The translations under genes were made by a program, and so were the position numbers. Shown one piece after another: positions 28,869 through 36,601 of a stretch of 59,570 nucleotides of DNA. This DNA is from Podarcis melisellensis (lineage: Eukaryota). Where the stretch lies: NCBI GenBank assembly GCA_964234715.1, contig OZ174276.1; one strand, 5' to 3'. A model generated the notes under the pieces. It did no database searches. It had not been told where the DNA came from and worked only from the letters and a program-made list of their open reading frames with translations. Each line of letters opens with the position of its first letter. Position 1 is the first letter of the stretch.

Positions 28869-29643
28869 GAGAGCCAGTGTGGTGTAGAGGTTAAAGAGCG
28901 GTAGTCTTGTAATCTGGTGAACAGGGTTCGCGTCCCCGCTCCTCCACATGCTACTGCTGGGTGACCTTGGGCTAGTCACACTTCTCTGAAGTCTCTCAGC
29001 CTCACTCACCACACAGAGTATTTGTTGTGGGGGAGGAAGGGAAAGGAGAATGTTAGCCGCTTTGAGACTCCTTTGTTGTTGTTTAGTTGTTTAGTCGTGT
29101 CCGACTCTTCGTGACCCCATGGACCAGAGCATGCCATGCACTCCTGTCTTCCACTGCCTCCCGCAGTTTGGTCAAACTCATGCTGGTAGCTTCAAGAACA
29201 CTGTCCAACCATCTCGTCCTCTGTCGTCCCCTTCTCCTTGTGCCCTCAATCTTTCCCAACATCAGGGTCTTTTTCAGGGAGTCTTCTTTTCTCATGAGGC
29301 AGCCAAAGTATTGGAGCCTCAGCTTCAGGATCTGTCCTTCCAGTGAGCACTTAGGGCTGATGTCCTTAAGAATGAATAGGTTTGATCTTCTTGCAGTCCA
29401 TGGGACTCTCAAGAGTCTCCTCCAGCACCATAATTCAAAAGCATCAATTCTTCGGCAATCTGCCTTCTTTATGGTCCAGCTCTCACTTCCATACATCACT
29501 ACTGGGAGAACCATAGCTTTAACTATACAGACCTTTGTTGGGAAGGTGATGTCTCTACTTTTTAAGATGCTGTCTAGGTTTGTCATTGCTTTTCTCCCAA
29601 GATTGAGACTCCTTAGGGTAGTGATAAAGTGGGATATCAAATT
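28869..29643 (+). mobile_element. Squam3-type SINE split by a BovB insertion
   Basis: 5' part at 28869-29073; the 3' part resumes at 29603 after the duplicated TTGAGACTCCTT. Confidence 0.88.
29074..29602 (-). mobile_element. BovB (RTE) LINE 3' fragment
   Basis: Encodes the BovB C-terminus (RIDAFELWCWRRLLRVPWTARRSN...EDRSAWHALVHGVTKSRTRL); (CAA)n tail; 12-bp TSD TTGAGACTCCTT (29062-29073 / 29603-29614). Confidence 0.95.
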
Positions 29644-30169
29644 TCTCTCTCATAATACTGCAACCCAGTTTCATCTGATGATGCTGAATGTTGGGAGATT
29701 CGGGCCAGAAATATCGCATAGTTCAACTAGGGAATTTGGTCCCACAAGGGTTAGTGATGGATGCTTTCCAAGATGATTAGACAAATCCATACAGGATAGT
29801 GGCTATGTCCTACCTCCAGAGTTGGAGGCAGTATGTCTCTGAGTCCAAAAGTTCATCCGTACCCAGAGTTCTTTTGTCTATCCCTGGGTGATGTTCCTTG
29901 CTACATCATCTATTTTGAATTGATCTTTATTACGGCCATTGGCCCGTCACACAACAGTTTCCCATACCACCATAATGTACTTGAACCTCCAAATTTAAAA
30001 CCGCCAAAACTTACAAAAAAAAAAAAAACAGACAAGAACCAAGCAAAACAAAAACAAAAGACCAACATCATACATTACAACAAATTTGTAGCATAAACAT
30101 CGCCCTCTGCTCATAAATTGATAGAAGACATCAATGGTGATATCACCTAATTACATCCTAAAGCATAGA

Positions 30170-33100
30170 TCATGGTTTAAAGGGATTATCCGAGCCACAC
30201 AGGAGTCCGTTTCTCTTCTTTAGGGATAGGACGCTGATCAAGAATCTGGCAACCATGAGTGATCTTAGGGGGTCATCATCATTTAATAGATATCTCAATT
30301 TGGCTTCAGTCGTATCATCGGCAATTCCCTTAAGATATTGAGCAAGAAACTTGCTCCTGGCCGATAAGTGAAAAGCACAATCAAGAATTATGTGATGCAA
30401 CGATTCTGGTGCCCCACAATTACAATCACATAAGAGCGATATCTGTCCATTGGAGAATCTATTTCTCAGCACGTTCGATGGGAAGGTGTTGAATCTTGCC
30501 TTTACAAAGGCATATCTATGAGCTGAGGAAGTTAAAGAATTCAAATAGTTTGGGAGCCTTAAGAGGGGTAATAAACCAAGATTTAGAGGTGAGCAGGTAC
30601 CATTGCCCAAGATCATTTTCTGCTGCAAGTCCATCTCCTCTAGCTTACAGGTTACTGTTCTTTTAGCTGGAACTATATCCTGCTCTAGTAATTTGGATGG
30701 GGAGATTCCCATTGCCATTATTTTCAGCTGTAATTTTTTTACCCATGGGCTCTGGAAATCATCTCTCCACATACATTGTATCAAGTACAAGTTTGGGAGA
30801 TTGTGCCATAGAGATAACCAGTGACAAAGTATGTGCTTCCACAGAGCATTTTCCAGGGATACAATATTAAGTTCCATGCGTAACGCTGTATTACTTACAC
30901 AGTTGGGCAGTTTCAATATCCCTCTTAAAAACTGATTTTGAATGACCTCCAGGTGAGATAGGTTGGCAAAAGTCCCCCAAATTGAGATGGCATAAGCAAT
31001 CGTCGGGATCACCTTGGCCTTGAAGACTTTCAACGCCGATGGGATATGAAGGGCCCCATCGGTGAAGAAGAATCGCAAGATCGCCAAGGAGATAGATTTG
31101 GCTCTATTTGTAACATAGGCTACATGGGCCTTCCATCTGAGGTTATGTTGTAACCAGACTCCCAAATATTGGAATCTATAGACTTGTTCGATGACTCTCC
31201 CATCAATTCTCCAATTATGGAGTTTCCGGCTCTTTGAGAAAATCAGGATCTTAGATTTTCCATAATTAATTGTAAGGGAATTTGCGTGACAGTATGATCC
31301 AAAAATTTTTAGGGCCCTCCTGAGACCTACTCTAGAAAAAGAAAGAATGACTGCGTCATCCGCATATAGTAACAAGGGGCAGCGATAAAGTGCTAGGCGG
31401 GGTGCATGAATCCTTTCTTGGGCCTCTATCAGGGGAGTCCTCATGTCACTTATGAACAAATTGAACAGGAGTGGAGCCAATATACAACCCTGTCGGACAC
31501 CTCTGTTAATGGGAATTGAATTCGTGAGATCACCCTCCGGGGTGAATCTCACTCTGGCCGCTGAGTTCTCATGGAGTTTGATTATTAGCCAGAGAAGCCT
31601 TCTGTCGATGCCCCAGCGGGTGAGTTTTTCCCAGAGGATGCTCCTGGGGATACTATCGAATGCTGCCTTCAGGTCAATGAATGCCACACAGAGTTGGCCA
31701 CCTTTTGGGGTGGAATATTTCCAGGCAAGATGCTGTAAAATTAGAATATGATTAATTGTTGACTGTTTTGGGCGGAATCCGGCTTGTTCGGGCCCAATTA
31801 ATTTTTTCTCTTCGGCCCATTGGATTAGTCTGTTCAACAGGGAGCGGGCATACAGTTTCCCCACTATTGAGAGCAGGCTGATGTTCCTGTAGTTCCCCGG
31901 GTCATCTGGTGAGCCCTTTTTGTGGATTGGAACGATAACAGCGTCCTTCCATACTTCCGGAATCATTCCAGAGTTGTTAACTGCATCGAAGATGTTCGCC
32001 AGGACCTTGGCCCACCAGTCTGCGTGGTATTTTATAGCTTCTGCTGGGATCAGGTCTGGCCCAGGCGCTTTCCCTGTTTTAAGGTTGACGATCAGGTCAT
32101 GGATGTCTTCCGGATCGGTAGGGGGCCAGAGGGGAAGCTGATCTTGAAATTCGTCTCTTGTGTTGACGATACAGTCAGTTGTGGCAAAGTAATTTTTTAA
32201 ATAAGATTCCCAAACTGGGGCGGGAATAATAGTTAAAGGGTATCTTTTAGTTCTTTTATTTACCAGGAGCCAAAATTGTCTGGTGTTCCGTGATGATGAG
32301 GCTTCTATAATTGCCCGCCATTGATTCGCTTGCCATTCCAGTCTGGCACCCTTTTGAATTTGCTTGTAGGCCGATTTTGCTTGGAAATATTCTTTTGGCA
32401 AGACCGTTGCCCCAGAGGCTTTATACTCTTTGTAGATGTTACCAAGAAGTTGTCTAGCCTGTTTACAAGCACTGTTGAACCACAATGCACCTGTCTTCCT
32501 TTGTGTTCGATTTATTATATGCATCGGGACAGAGAAAAAAGACGTTAGATCTTCCGACAGATTCGAGAATAGTCTTAGGGTTTGGTCGTAATCATGATAA
32601 TCCTCAATTAATCCTGAATATGCTTGTTTTAGTCCTTGTTGTAAATATGCTGAGAATTTTTGAGCATGAAGTTCGGACCATTTTACACTTTTGACTTGCA
32701 GTACTGGGTTCGTAACCAAATGTGTTGGATGTCTGTCTCCATCTGGGGTCCAGTCTATAGTCATTGTGGCGACCAACGGTAGGTGGTCGCTCAGTTGAAT
32801 ATTTTCAACTTTAAAATGGGAAAATTTGGGGAATATATCATGAGATACCAGCATATAATCCAGGACACTGTTTGCAGAGGGGCTTATGTATGTGAACTCA
32901 CCCGGTATGTCAGGTGGGCAGTTCCCGTTTAGAATCACTAAGTTTAGACGTAGTACCAATTGGTAAAGAAGGGTTCCTGCTTCATTTACCCTTCCGTCTT
33001 TGGAGAGTCTTTGATTGTGGAGGGAGAGGTCATTAATGAATTCAGGGGTTATCCACCATTTGGCTTTGGTTAAGGACTCCCAGTTTGTTGCAATGCGAGC

Positions 33101-33565
33101 ATTGAAATCCCCTGCTATAACATTGGGTATATTGGGGTGTTTGGAGTGACAAAGAATAAGATGTTCCTCCAGGATTCCCCATTTATTGTATAAGTCAGCA
33201 ATGTTGCCTCCAGGAGGAAGATAAACATTTGTTATAGCAAGTTCGAAGTTTTTCCCCGTAATCAGGGCTGTAATTGCAAGGGTGGAAGCATTTACAAGCG
33301 TGAGTTTTGCCCGTATTTTCAAGGAAATTGCTATGACTAATCCTCCACTAGGCCGGCCTCCTTTAGTGGACGGGCATGCTGGTAATGATATAGCATCAAA
33401 CCCATTAATATTTACTCTCCCCTCTTCCCATGTTTCCTGCAGGAGAATTACTTGGTGTGAGTTTATTAGTTTTACAAAGTCTGGGTCGAATTTTTTCCCC
33501 TTCCAACCTGCTATGTTCCAGCTTAAAAGGGAGAACGGGGGAGAGTTTGGCTGAGGTTTGGGTAG
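30170..33565 (-). CDS. LINE ORF2: APE endonuclease, reverse transcriptase and C-terminal CCHC motif (1131 codons stop-to-stop, no initiator AUG)
   Basis: The frame is open from the codon right after the ORF1 TGA (LPKPQPNSPPFSLLSWNIAGWKGKK...ILLQETW), 81 codons upstream of the TTG used by the ORF track. EN motifs: WNI, QETW, VYLPP, GDFNAR, LDY, SDHLP. RT motifs: KAPGPD, NYRNISLL, QAGFR, FIDLKAAFDS, GVRQGC, YADD, YLG. Confidence 0.95.
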   Translation of the reverse strand, partial: LPKPQPNSPPFSLLSWNIAGWKGKKFDPDFVKLINSHQVILLQETWEEGRVNINGFDAISLPACPSTKGGRPSGGLVIAISLKIRAKLTLVNASTLAITALITGKNFELAITNVYLPPGGNIADLYNKWGILEEHLILCHSKHPNIPNVIAGDFNARIATNWESLTKAKWWITPEFINDLSLHNQRLSKDGRVNEAGTLLYQLVLRLNLVILNGNCPPDIPGEFTYISPSANSVLDYMLVSHDIFPKFSHFKVENIQLSDHLPLVATMTIDWTPDGDRHPTHLVTNPVLQVKSVKWSELHAQKFSAYLQQGLKQAYSGLIEDYHDYDQTLRLFSNLSEDLTSFFSVPMHIINRTQRKTGALWFNSACKQARQLLGNIYKEYKASGATVLPKEYFQAKSAYKQIQKGARLEWQANQWRAIIEASSSRNTRQFWLLVNKRTKRYPLTIIPAPVWESYLKNYFATTDCIVNTRDEFQDQLPLWPPTDPEDIHDLIVNLKTGKAPGPDLIPAEAIKYHADWWAKVLANIFDAVNNSGMIPEVWKDAVIVPIHKKGSPDDPGNYRNISLLSIVGKLYARSLLNRLIQWAEEKKLIGPEQAGFRPKQSTINHILILQHLAWKYSTPKGGQLCVAFIDLKAAFDSIPRSILWEKLTRWGIDRRLLWLIIKLHENSAARVRFTPEGDLTNSIPINRGVRQGCILAPLLFNLFISDMRTPLIEAQERIHAPRLALYRCPLLLYADDAVILSFSRVGLRRALKIFGSYCHANSLTINYGKSKILIFSKSRKLHNWRIDGRVIEQVYRFQYLGVWLQHNLRWKAHVAYVTNRAKSISLAILRFFFTDGALHIPSALKVFKAKVIPTIAYAISIWGTFANLSHLEVIQNQFLRGILKLPNCVSNTALRMELNIVSLENALWKHILCHWLSLWHNLPNLYLIQCMWRDDFQSPWVKKLQLKIMAMGISPSKLLEQDIVPAKRTVTCKLEEMDLQQKMILGNGTCSPLNLGLLPLLRLPNYLNSLTSSAHRYAFVKARFNTFPSNVLRNRFSNGQISLLCDCNCGAPESLHHIILDCAFHLSARSKFLAQYLKGIADDTTEAKLRYLLNDDDPLRSLMVARFLISVLSLKKRNGLLCGSDNPFKP

Positions 33566-35311
33566 TCACAATGGAGAAGGGGGGAACGCTGATCTTGGTG
33601 GGTTGTCAAATTTAAAGAAGTCAGTAATTTTCCTTTGACTAATGGTAGATGACTTCTCTCCTTTTGGCGCAGGTGTGCCTCTTGAGCTATTGTGAATATA
33701 GATAATATTTGATGTTTTTAGCTGTCGGGCCCAACTAGGCCCTGAAGAGGCTCCTGCCAAGTCCGCTGGAGCTGTCCTCTTTGGGGATCTAACCGATCCA
33801 TTTGTGATCATTTGGTTTATATGTCCTGCTGGGTCTTCAGTCCACTCTGTGGTGACTCGCGGCACTGTGGTGTCTTCCTCACATGATTGTTGGATTTTTG
33901 GTGGAGAAGCCTTACTTGAGGTGGCCACTACCGTCTCAGGACGTGGATGGTCTTCGATGTATGTTGATTCCAAGTCCGGCATGGAGGGGTGAAGGGACAA
34001 CGATTTATCCAGGGGGGTGTTATCCTGAGTTCCATTCTTGGATCGGTTAATCACAGAGGGAACAGATAAGTCTATTAAAAGCAGGGATGAGTTACCAGCG
34101 TGAAGGGGAGGAGAAGAGTCTGCCTCCAGCAGTGGGACCTTCCCATCTACTGCAGAGGGCACCTTATATGCTGGGTATTGGGGAATTGTTGTTTCCATCT
34201 CCATGGGGCATGGCACCGCTAAATTAGAGTGGGTATCGTTCGTAGGAACTCCGTTGCAGGCGATCCTTAGGAGCTGAAGTTTAAGTAAATCCAGCCTATT
34301 TATAATATCTTGTTGTTCCATCGCTGGTAACTCTCCAAAGGAGGCGATGAGCTCTCTTTCCTCCTGGGGTGTCAAAGAGTTACTGGCACACTCGTAGTGT
34401 TTGGTTGTAGGAGTGGAGTTACTATGAGACTGGCCCAGACATGGAGTGTACAGCTCAGCCCTCTTTTGTGGTTCAGGGCGGGAGGGTTGTACCGTCTCCT
34501 TGGTTAATCCCTCTGATAGGAGGGGTCTAATTTTGGAATCCATGAAAACTCTCGTTGGAAAAATACCAAGATTATTCAAAAAAACTTTTTGCTTAATAAT
34601 AAGAGAGGGGATTTTTGCAGAGTAGAAAGCCAGCATCACTCTCTGATATCTGTTCTGGCTAACTAAGGGAAGCACAGCACAAAGATCTATTTGTGATGCC
34701 TCGAGTTTTAGAAGCCATCTGAGGTGCTCTTTAGTCCCATGTAGCGTTGTCCAACTTAGGTCCCTTCCCCGGAAGGTTAGGGAAATCTTCCTTGGATGTA
34801 GAATCAGGGATTGGCGATTCAGTGCGGGGTTGAGATTGTATTTGCAGTTCTTCATACAATCGGTGTTTGGTGGAGCTTTCTGCCGGCGCAATGGAACATC
34901 TACTGCCCCCTCTTGGGCTGTCTGTGCCGGCTGGTGATCCAGTTTTTGCTGAAGACTATGCAGCTGAGAGGATAGGCCATCAATTTTCTTAAATATACAG
35001 TTTAGAGTTCTAATTATTAGATGGAGTTGCTCGCATCCTGTGCAGTCCGATTCGGCTACCAATTCCTCCTTTGGATAGGGACCATCCCCATTTGTGTTAC
35101 CATTAGCGTTTCCAATTTGTAACGTCTCAGGGGCCTCATCTTCTGATGTTGTTTCAAGGGCAGTTAGAGGATCGAAACGTTTTTGAGTTGCTATTGAGTA
35201 GGTACATTCTTTGGGGCCTCTCCCTCCTTTAGGTGAACCCTTCCTTAATTGCTTAGGCCTTGGAGAGGATAATGCCTCGTCAGAGTCTCTTGGACGTTTT
35301 CCATGGCCCAT
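33566..35311 (-). CDS. LINE ORF1 protein (581 aa): basic N-terminus, coiled coil, central putative RRM-like domain, disordered tail with PIP box
   Basis: Uninterrupted ATG..TGA ORF upstream of the EN-RT. Contains a KRFDPL motif, a heptad-like stretch LHLIIRTLNCIFKKIDGLSSQLHSLQQKL, and C-terminal QRKITDFF. Domain calls are inference. Confidence 0.85.
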   Translation of the reverse strand: MGHGKRPRDSDEALSSPRPKQLRKGSPKGGRGPKECTYSIATQKRFDPLTALETTSEDEAPETLQIGNANGNTNGDGPYPKEELVAESDCTGCEQLHLIIRTLNCIFKKIDGLSSQLHSLQQKLDHQPAQTAQEGAVDVPLRRQKAPPNTDCMKNCKYNLNPALNRQSLILHPRKISLTFRGRDLSWTTLHGTKEHLRWLLKLEASQIDLCAVLPLVSQNRYQRVMLAFYSAKIPSLIIKQKVFLNNLGIFPTRVFMDSKIRPLLSEGLTKETVQPSRPEPQKRAELYTPCLGQSHSNSTPTTKHYECASNSLTPQEERELIASFGELPAMEQQDIINRLDLLKLQLLRIACNGVPTNDTHSNLAVPCPMEMETTIPQYPAYKVPSAVDGKVPLLEADSSPPLHAGNSSLLLIDLSVPSVINRSKNGTQDNTPLDKSLSLHPSMPDLESTYIEDHPRPETVVATSSKASPPKIQQSCEEDTTVPRVTTEWTEDPAGHINQMITNGSVRSPKRTAPADLAGASSGPSWARQLKTSNIIYIHNSSRGTPAPKGEKSSTISQRKITDFFKFDNPPRSAFPPSPL

Positions 35312-35825
35312 AAATCAATTTTGCAGGAGCTGGGGAGCTCCTTAAATCCTTTAGTCTTCCTCACAAGAATACTACCACTTCCAGGAGAGTGGTGCCATAA
35401 AATTACTCACAGTAAGGCAGTCAGTTCAAGCCTCTTCCTTCCCCTTTTCCTTGTTCCTAGGATTTTTGAGACAGCTCGGTTCCAGCAGTCGGGCAAAATT
35501 CACTTCGTAGTGTGCAATAAACTAAAAGCTAAAGGAAAGAGCTGGTCGACAGGGCAGAGGATTTATGCCCAGGAGAACCTTTCACTTATCTCTTCCAGTT
35601 AGGGAGGCGGCGGCAGCCGTGGCGGCAAGTCCGGGCGTCGGAGCCACCCAGATAAAAAGAAAACAAAGATAAAACAAGTAGCGGGATACTAAAAGATACT
35701 AAAAGACAGCCAGCACAGCCAGCAGATCATTAAAACTCACGGATAAAAACAAGGGAGGATAAAAACCGCATAAAACCACTTAAAACTTTGATAAGAGTAA
35801 GCGAAATTACTCGGAGACTACCTTC

Positions 35826-35838
35826 GCCGCCATGTTGG
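35826..35838 (-). promoter_or_regulatory. YY1-type motif (CCAACATGGCGGC) at +11..+23 of the LINE 5'UTR; probable internal Pol II promoter
   Basis: Matches the YY1 consensus CAANATGGCGGC. Position relative to the TSD-defined 5' end parallels the YY1 site of mammalian L1. A CpG-rich stretch lies at about 35600-35645. Confidence 0.6.
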
Positions 35839-36246
35839 ATCCTCCTTCCTACATCATCTATTTTTAAAAAATATGTGCTCAACAAGGATTGGAGCCAAGG
35901 AGGACATCCTCATTATCTGTGGTGGGGAAAGGAATTGCCTGTGACTAATATAATTCTTACAGATGGAGTTTCTGCATCAGCTCCACAATCTCCTAGTGAA
36001 CACTGAGGCATGGGCAGAAAATCAGATTAATTATAAGGAAATGAATGGGTGGAATTCACTTTTCCACGAAAGACAGAAGATAAACAGTTGGAAGAACAGG
36101 ATGTAGAGAGGAAAAGAACTGTGCTGTGACAGTGGAAAAGGCTGGTTCACTCTGTTGACAACAGGTGTCAACTGGGTCTCTTGTGGTGGTACTGATTGAT
36201 GCCTGCCGAGACTCTCTGGCAGCTGTGCCATGTCTCATTAGCTCTG

Positions 36247-36601
36247 CCCTGATTGTAAAGATGTAGGAGGATCTTATTGTTCTGTTCACTTCTTAGATTG
36301 AGAAGGCTGCGCAGGGAAGAACATTTCAGAGAGAAAGACCAAGAGAGATGTGGGCATTTGTTGTTCTCTGAGTCAACAACAAAACCAAGAACAGTTGTCC
36401 TAAGTATATGTACTAGGAAGTGGTGTTCCCTGGTTGTAAAGATGTAGGAAGGGCTTATTGTTCTGTTCACTTCTTGAACTGACAAGGTTGTACAGGGGGG
36501 AAATTTCAGAGAGAAAAAACAGGAGAGAGGTGGGCATTTGTTGCTTGCTGAGTCAATGGTGGTGAAACCAAAAGCTGTTATCTTATGCATATGTACTAGG
36601 A
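36247..36601. repeat. Diverged two-copy tandem duplication, period about 181 bp
   Basis: CCCTG.TTGTAAAGATGTAGGA..CTTATTGTTCTGTTCACTTCTT..TGGGCATTTGTTG..TATGTACTAGGA occurs at 36247 and 36428. Confidence 0.9.

Follow-up and report, generated by a model that had tools for sequence, protein, structure and literature searches.

How does a retrotransposon make its enzyme when the reading frame that encodes it has no start codon at its beginning? The question is raised by a full-length long interspersed nuclear element (LINE) on the minus strand of a 59,570-nt stretch of DNA from the lizard Podarcis melisellensis (contig OZ174276.1; the whole stretch is called the window below), in which two open reading frames (ORFs) follow one another in the same frame and are parted by a single UGA. 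The translation of ORF2 from bicistronic LINE RNA is a long-standing question, for which the only characterised answers are the termination-reinitiation of SART1 and an ill-defined, AUG-independent route in L1. In the present study, we compared the junction of the window copy with that of its relatives. The best reading, to which we give about an even chance, is that programmed readthrough of the UGA would yield a minor fusion of ORF1 with the endonuclease (EN) and reverse transcriptase (RT) of ORF2.

The junction in the window copy and in its relatives

In the window copy, ORF1 ends in CCA TTG TGA and is followed directly by CTA CCC AAA CCT (minus strand; coordinates in the table). The frame behind the stop is that of ORF1 and stays open for 1131 codons up to the TGA that terminates ORF2, with neither spacer nor frameshift, and a ribosome reading through would make a protein of 1713 amino acids (aa; 581 + 1 + 1131). 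The Exo_endo_phos profile of Pfam is covered completely (1-225 of 225) by post-stop residues 14-261, and the catalytic Asn of the SWNIAG motif is already reached at post-stop codon 17. An in-frame AUG first appears at codon 238 (32854-32852, VLDYM), past the SWNI, QETW, YLPP and GDFN motifs; post-stop codons 1-17 include neither an AUG nor a codon one base away from it, the first such near-cognate being an AUA at codon 18, beyond the catalytic Asn. These features of the junction (its coordinates, the TGA-CTA, the shared frame, the end of ORF2 and the lack of a spacer or frameshift) had been described in an earlier note on this DNA, along with the first AUG lying past four EN motifs and the sum of 1713 aa, and every one of them was borne out.

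For the comparison we took ORF2 homologues at 95, 67, 59, 56, 54 and 33-36% identity together with the DNA surrounding them; ORF1 and ORF2 served as separate queries in the protein searches, and locus L090 was left out. Several clusters of ORF2 homologues include proteins of Podarcis muralis or P. lilfordi, so the LINE family lives in lacertid lizards, and several of its lineages coexist in one genome. A maximum-likelihood tree (quick IQ-TREE) gave one strongly supported clade of three subclades, namely A (L019 and L018), B (L014, then L015 with L016) and C (L013 and P0005, then L010, L002 and the window copy with L001). A scan of metagenomes for further members of the clade returned only outgroups, at identities of about 30% or less, four of which were used for the start and frame of ORF2.

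The arrangement ORF1-TGA-C-ORF2, in frame, is present in eight of eight diverged lineages, which cover all three subclades and ORF2 identities from 95% down to 34%. The junction reads TTG TGA CTA in the window copy and L001, ATC TGA CTA in L002-9, TTT TGA CTG in L010/11, AAA TGA CAG TCA in L013, AAT TGA CAT in L015, ATA TGA CAA CTA in L016/17, AGT TGA CGA in L018 and GAG TGA CTA in L019/20. When the eight were aligned on the stop, the only invariant columns within 30 nt on either side were the TGA itself and the C at position +4, while pairwise identity of the flanks was 0.30 overall and 0.25, the random level, among the deep lineages. The terminators of ORF2 in the same eight lineages are TGA twice, TAA five times and TAG once, followed by T, T, A, T, G, T, A and C (C once). 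Fisher tests of the ORF1 stops against the ORF2 stops gave p = 0.0035 for TGA, p = 0.0007 for the +4 C and p = 7.8e-5 for both together, values that are approximate in treating the lineages as independent, which is reasonable given the saturated flanks. The recurrence of the junction in eight diverged lineages exceeds chance. Frame and stop identity, whose conservation the earlier note had proposed to check, are thus kept down to 34% ORF2 identity, and no relative has a sense codon in place of the stop. The UGA-CUA context that it had singled out fared less evenly: UGA and the +4 C are invariant (8/8), and CUA is found in only three of the eight deep lineages (window/L001, L002 and L019), whereas L013 (CAG UCA) and L016 (CAA CUA) carry hexamers of the form CAR-YYA.

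The frame has been held through changes in length. Counted from the stop, the W of SWNIAG comes at codon 16 in subclade C, at 15 in L016, 19 in L018, 18 in L019 and 93 in L015; as the distance to EN varies while the frame holds, indels have occurred here, always in threes. The extreme case is L015 (1429-1704), whose linker between stop and EN has grown from about 15 to 92 codons, and this 78-codon expansion contains no stop in the ORF1/ORF2 frame as against 6 and 9 in the other frames (P(open) ~0.013). Between close copies the linker differs at 3 sites (window against L001) and at 1 (L019 against L020), too few for a ratio of nonsynonymous to synonymous substitution rates (dN/dS). No AUG lies between stop and EN in the window copy, L001, L010, L013 or L019. 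Outside the clade, at about 25-27% identity, ORF2 starts with an AUG in L022, L028, L029 and L085, and ORF1 and ORF2 lie in different frames in L028, L029 and L021, which marks the in-frame UGA-C junction as a derived trait of this clade.

Versions of the element lacking the stop were likewise looked for among proteins. An exhaustive search of 1.84 billion representative proteins found no ORF1-ORF2 fusion, the longest of 51 ORF1 homologues having at most 617 aa, and a word-indexed search (lengths up to 1979 aa) found no close ORF2 homologue of fusion length. Stop-free versions were therefore not seen.

One lineage nested inside subclade B (L014, L023-L027, P0136-138 and members from Podarcis muralis) departs from this arrangement. 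Its ORF2 lies in the -1 frame and overlaps ORF1 by 49 nt, and the overlap contains the heptamer U_UUU_UUA in the zero frame of ORF1 (L014 2242-2248). Six contigs from six samples share exactly this junction, which a more diverged member of the cluster also keeps. If read as frameshifting, this lineage would make the same type of ORF1-ORF2 fusion by the other classical route, as is to be expected if the fusion is the functional product. The likeness to the -1 frameshifting of human immunodeficiency virus 1 (HIV-1) extends to the identical U_UUU_UUA in the upstream zero frame and to the polymerase ORF in -1; unlike that system, the downstream hairpin of L014 and L023 is weak and 14 nt off, and the T7-AG could be a splice acceptor. 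The 5' untranslated region (UTR) of the same lineage has a poly-T tract that ranges from T11 to T28 between contigs (L014 about 1-30; L023 about 255-265).

Readthrough and its rivals

No termination context known in eukaryotes is leakier than a UGA with C behind it; UGA-CUA serves as the readthrough signal of the alphavirus and tobravirus type, and a stop followed by CAR-YYA that of the tobacco mosaic virus (TMV) type. According to the reading that we favour, the conserved UGA-C would be the leaky ORF1 terminator of this squamate LINE clade. Most ribosomes would stop there and release the ORF1 protein (ORF1p), a coiled-coil, RRM-like RNA-binding protein, and a small fraction would decode the UGA by a near-cognate tRNA, stay in frame and, after a short linker rich in Pro and Ser, translate the endonuclease, RT and CCHC domains. 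The product, an ORF1-EN-RT fusion of about 190 kDa, would be the source of the element's enzyme, made in a ratio to ORF1p like that of Gag-Pol to Gag. What the sequences show directly is the anatomy, the conserved stop, +4 base and frame and, in the window lineage, the missing start codon; that readthrough takes place, how efficient it is and that the fusion is the active protein are inferred. The earlier note had arrived at the same reading, which the conserved in-frame UGA-C and the lack of stop-free relatives strengthen and the variable CUA weakens, the mechanism itself staying at the level of a proposal.

ORF1p offers a further hint. It has no sequence relatives in Pfam or the PDB, and the homology of its core (aa about 168-340) extends to all three subclades. 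An AlphaFold model (AF2, 14 sequences) with a mean pLDDT (predicted local distance difference test) of 47 shows a long helix at 92-125, a confident beta-alpha-beta-beta-alpha-beta domain at 167-260 (about 90) and two helices at 316-353, the remainder being disordered, including a 230-residue tail that runs to the stop. The modelled domain gave weak matches to RNA recognition motifs (RRMs), and by its model ORF1p resembles the ORF1 proteins that combine a coiled coil with an RRM. The Pro/Ser-rich disordered tail carries on past the stop into the linker, and exactly 15 residues before the stop, between flanks that vary, stands Q[RS]KITDFF, which looks like a PCNA-interacting peptide (PIP) box, in L001, L002, L010, L013 and P0121/123/124. 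In subclade B a related QSKIT[SQ]YF is located at the ORF1 N-terminus (aa 28-35 of L014 and L023; aa 20-27 of L016). In ORF2 a conserved PIP-like motif is absent from every lineage, L018 showing a single isolated pattern match. Human L1 has its PCNA-binding PIP box in ORF2p. A PIP-box-like motif borne by ORF1 would become part of the RT-bearing polypeptide only in a fusion, a slight hint in favour of one. In its widest form, the proposal is that the whole lacertid clade expresses EN and RT only as a recoded C-terminal extension of ORF1p, switching between UGA-C readthrough and -1 frameshifting at U_UUU_UUA, with the PIP box of ORF1 serving the fusion at the integration site; to this we give somewhat less than an even chance.

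Several observations weigh against readthrough. CUA is not invariant, and the CUG of L010, the CAU of L015 and the CGA of L018 are not classical motifs. An AUG precedes EN in L002 (+11), L016 (+5), L018 (+11) and L015 (several), at non-homologous positions, and could allow separate initiation there; the statement of the earlier note that an AUG start cannot give a functional EN consequently applies to the window lineage and not to these four. In single folds of the eight lineages we found no RNA structure behind the stop that was conserved or unusually stable: the z-scores ranged from -2.3 to +1.4 and were near 0 in seven of the eight, the RNAalifold consensus of subclade C reached -6.5 kcal/mol with a covariation term of +0.2, and a local hairpin over the SWNIAGW codons lacked covariation. 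Any readthrough would therefore rest on the local context alone and be low. A stimulatory structure on the 3' side is indispensable for readthrough of the murine leukaemia virus type; signals of the UGA-C type often have one but can do without it. In the -1 lineage, what accompanies the heptamer is a hairpin of 6 bp only, 14 nt away, and a GC hairpin (z = -1.7), the usual companion of such a site being a stable stem-loop or pseudoknot at 5-9 nt; its T7-AG lends itself to a second reading as a 3' splice site. Moreover, conservation of the frame would be equally expected if translation restarted, or an exon began, directly after the stop, and ORF2 of human L1 can indeed be translated without its AUG through an unconventional termination-reinitiation (PMC5972666, PMC5009743).

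The last point leads to the strongest competitor of readthrough, which we consider rather unlikely: termination-reinitiation, or another AUG-independent initiation such as that of L1, whereby ribosomes would resume after the UGA and make a separate ORF2p of about 130 kDa and no fusion. It has precedent on its side, since characterised LINEs behave in this way, SART1 at its UAAUG and L1 without need of its AUG (reviews PMC5972666, PMC5009743); it can draw on the AUG that four lineages carry shortly ahead of EN, and a restart directly after the stop would also hold the spacer coding and in frame. At the junctions themselves, however, no lineage has a stop-start overlap (UAAUG or AUGA), and the 17 post-stop codons of the window offer neither AUG nor near-cognate. 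Reinitiation also leaves unexplained why the stop is always UGA + C while the ORF2 stops drift, why known readthrough hexamers occur repeatedly, and what led one lineage to adopt a -1 overlap that carries a canonical slippery heptamer. A second competitor, which we hold to be improbable, is a spliced subgenomic mRNA for ORF2, in which the exon with the AUG of the YY1-like box (35833-35831; donor AAG/GT at 35821, the slash marking the cut) would be joined to the CAG ending at 33551, the invariant UGAC would act as the branch point and the product would begin MAAK-PNSPPFSLLSWNI. A leader AUG followed by donor-like and acceptor-like sites of matching phase makes such an mRNA conceivable: the window has AAG/GTAGTC behind the leader AUG and, at the junction, a pyrimidine-rich tract, UGAC and CAG; L010 has a strong donor GAG/GTAAGA and an acceptor CATAG/A; the phases agree in both testable lineages (0/0 in the window, 2/2 in L010); and the T7-AG of the -1 lineage is a good acceptor. 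Yet a GT donor is absent from the corresponding position of L002, the window donor is weak, lacking the consensus A at +4 and G at +5, AG dinucleotides are frequent, and a phase match has a chance of 1/9. Nor would splicing call for the invariant stop, for the vertebrate branch-point consensus yUnAy leaves the G free, and UAAC would be an equally good branch point and stop; the YY1 box already explains the leader AUG. None of the cluster members is of the length of a spliced retrocopy, an observation of low power, and through cis-preference a spliced ORF2 mRNA would spread copies devoid of ORF1.

Two further explanations are next to impossible. Taken alone, a single copy cannot discriminate between a conserved stop and a copy-specific nonsense mutation (e.g., CGA or TGG to TGA) that killed an element with a single ORF, the choice to which the earlier note had pointed. 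The comparative data decide it in favour of the conserved stop and rule the mutation out: TGA stands at the homologous site in eight of eight in-frame lineages and in every copy read, neither of the two database searches found a fused protein, the ORFs are intact and the 16-bp target-site duplications (TSDs) are perfect. Equally far-fetched would be the recoding of the UGA as selenocysteine through a selenocysteine insertion sequence (SECIS) in the 3' UTR. UGA is the codon for selenocysteine and is strictly conserved here, but a search of 29800-36000 with permissive filters found no match to SECIS or any other Rfam family at E <= 1, beyond one small hairpin the short 3' UTRs vary from lineage to lineage, and the residue would fall in a disordered linker.

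Placement among LINEs and comparison with known recoding

The earlier note had labelled the element RTE-X. The label is unsupported and at odds with the anatomy, which comprises two ORFs, a C-terminal CX3CX7HX4C motif and a 3' end of hairpin, AAUAAA and microsatellite tail; RTE and RTEX elements are compact and essentially of a single ORF, which a 5.9-kb element with two ORFs and a CCHC motif does not match. No Pfam match to RNase H was found in the element. Vingi, the sister of Ingi, has been described as a compact, single-ORF LINE with an APE-type endonuclease and no RNase H; Vingi-1_Acar has a single ORF and Vingi-2_Gav measures 3.1 kb, as against two ORFs and 5.9 kb here, and these descriptions make membership of Vingi unlikely. 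The nearest solved RT structure is that of human L1 ORF2p (E = 3.7e-31). An assignment to the L1 clade was nevertheless rejected, as that similarity is limited to the RT region, ORF1 has no Pfam (Transposase_22) or PDB match and the tails are microsatellites and not poly(A).

The 3' end points elsewhere. In the window copy, L001, L010, L013, L014, L018 and L019 it consists of a short hairpin, then AAUAAA, then a lineage-specific tandem repeat of 4-6 nt, the tails being (CAATC)n, (TATC)n, (TTTGAA)n, (GATTT)n, (TTGA)n or (GTGAAA)n according to lineage. The hairpin GGCC-AAU-GGCC appears as GGCU-UAU-AGCC in L010 and L013, a compensatory change; apart from this small hairpin, the short 3' UTRs diverge between lineages. 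A 3' hairpin with a short tandem-repeat tail is also found in the stringent-type LINEs of the CR1/L2 group (ZfL2-1/ZfL2-2 and UnaL2; PMC4176376). L2 elements of lizards are reported to have two ORFs, with subgroups about 37% identical (PMC7140322), which is similar to the spread in the present clade. Unlike that group, the present element carries the C-terminal CX3CX7HX4C motif and AAUAAA, and its ORF2 sequences have a GC content of 37-45%, against about 55% reported for Anolis L2 (PMC7140322). Judged by the 3' end, membership of L2 is plausible.

As for the junction, its closest counterparts are viral. The gag-pol of murine leukaemia virus (MuLV) and the nsP3/nsP4 of alphaviruses likewise have an abundant upstream structural or RNA-binding protein, a single in-frame stop and a polymerase without its own start, and in the LINE clade, too, the UGA is followed by C (CUA in several lineages), with the identity of the stop conserved. 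The differences are that the present host is a non-LTR retrotransposon, has no protease to split the fusion and is known from sequence alone, and that behind the LINE stop we found neither a pseudoknot nor an extended stem-loop. Among LINEs, readthrough has been proposed for the Group 3 non-LTR retrotransposons of Paramecium and frameshifting for their sister groups (PMC5405496). That host is a ciliate with a reassigned code, the elements belong to another LINE clade and the alternative is +1 instead of -1; no analysis of context or conservation was given there (PMC5405496), and both cases are drawn from sequence. With SART1 (UAAUG) and mammalian L1, whose ORF2 AUG is dispensable (PMC5972666, PMC5009743), the element shares a bicistronic RNA and an ORF2 that depends on ribosomes having translated ORF1; it differs from them in lacking a stop-start overlap or an inter-ORF spacer, in its invariant in-frame UGA-C and in the predicted fusion. 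APE-type LINEs of animals also carry 2A-like "ribosome skipping" sequences, a virus-like recoding (PMC3708506), with the difference that 2A splits the products of one ORF, whereas here two ORFs would be joined. In-frame stop suppression was reportedly also proposed for plant LINEs (ATLN of Arabidopsis) by Noma in 2000.

In the literature searched we found no report of readthrough in a vertebrate LINE. The kind of mechanism is already known as a proposal for ciliate LINEs, and what the present clade would add is a well-defined, strongly conserved vertebrate case with a switch between readthrough and -1 frameshifting within one clade. For the question of how ORF2 is translated, it is the cleaner case: a single invariant UGA-C marks the junction, EN lacks a start codon, and the slippery heptamer of a sister lineage is canonical. 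Should the fusion exist, ORF1p and ORF2p can work while covalently linked, which bears on cis-preference and on the stoichiometry of the ribonucleoprotein (RNP), and the efficiency of termination would set the ratio of ORF1p to ORF2p. A non-LTR element would then follow the logic of Gag and Gag-Pol and depart from the L1 paradigm, in which ORF2p is a separate protein. Compact reptile LINEs are being engineered as gene-writing tools (PMC13708176), for which the fusion would provide a built-in control of the ratio. For annotation the rule is simple: an in-frame stop in these elements does not mark a dead copy.

Anatomy of the window copy and its surroundings

The features of the window copy are listed in the table; no second copy of the LINE was found within the window. 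Of the C-terminal Cys/His motif, residues C1046, C1048, H1058 and C1063 are invariant in alignment A3.

Table. Features of the LINE copy in the Podarcis melisellensis window (positions in the window; domain residues of ORF2 counted from the ORF1 stop).
Feature	Position	Strand	Remarks
Full-length LINE copy, 5932 bp, both ORFs intact	29917..35848	-	Bounded by TSDs; ORF2 95% identical to P0001/L001
5' TSD, 16 bp, AAAATAGATGATGTAG on the element strand	35849..35864	-	Exact second copy at 29901-29916
3' TSD, 16 bp, perfect match to the 5' one	29901..29916	-	
5' UTR with YY1-like box CCAACATGGCGGCG at 35838-35825	35312..35848	-	
ORF1, 581 aa + TGA, ATG start; coiled coil, RRM-like domain, long disordered tail	33566..35311	-	
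Predicted coiled-coil helix of ORF1p, aa 92-125	34937..35038	-	AF2 model
RRM-like domain of ORF1p, aa 167-260, pLDDT about 90	34532..34813	-	AF2 model, weak RRM matches
PIP-box-like motif QRKITDFF, 15 residues ahead of the ORF1 stop	33614..33637	-	Kept in relatives
ORF1 terminator UGA, proposed leaky stop	33566..33568	-	TGA in 8/8 in-frame lineages
CUA codon after the stop	33563..33565	-	+4 C = 33565, invariant in the clade
Pro/Ser-rich linker LPKPQPNSPPFSL, 13 codons from stop to EN fold	33527..33565	-	Without AUG or near-cognate
Possible 3' splice site CAG within the linker	last base 33551	-	
APE-type endonuclease, post-stop residues 14-261	32783..33526	-	Pfam PF03372 full-length, E = 3.4e-10; PF14529
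Reverse transcriptase, post-stop residues 547-804	31154..31927	-	Pfam PF00078 (RVT_1), E = 1.7e-35
C-terminal Cys/His motif CDCNCGAPESLHHIILDC, fits CX3CX7HX4C, residues 1046-1063	30377..30430	-	
ORF2 terminator TGA-T	30170..30172	-	
3' UTR with hairpin GGGCCAATGGCC (29945-29934), AATAAA (29931-29926) and terminal GATCAATTC	29917..30169	-	

The YY1-like box lies 10 nt from the 5' end of the element and is kept in three lineages, the window copy, L010/L011 (L010 about 60-85) and L002 (about 8-25); it resembles the YY1 site at the start of the 5' UTR of human L1. Its ATG opens an upstream ORF of 8 codons in the window copy and of 4-19 codons across lineages, and a GT donor-like site follows this ATG in two of the three lineages that carry the box. 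At the other end, the tail of the window copy (region 29917-29945) amounts to barely one repeat unit, and the TSD begins with AAAA. A T14 run in the 3' UTR at 30015-30028 (-) corresponds to T6 in the 95%-identical L001, i.e., a homopolymer of variable length.

Just upstream of the insertion site, at 36247-36556, a unit of about 181 nt occurs twice in tandem, the copies being 83-87% identical. On the far side, an ORF of 185 codons adjoins the 3' TSD (about 29075-29640, -) and has no match in Pfam; the sequence downstream of it ends in ...GAAGAGTCGGACACGACTAAACAAC..., which we take to be a BovB/RTE 3' region of the kind typical of squamates.

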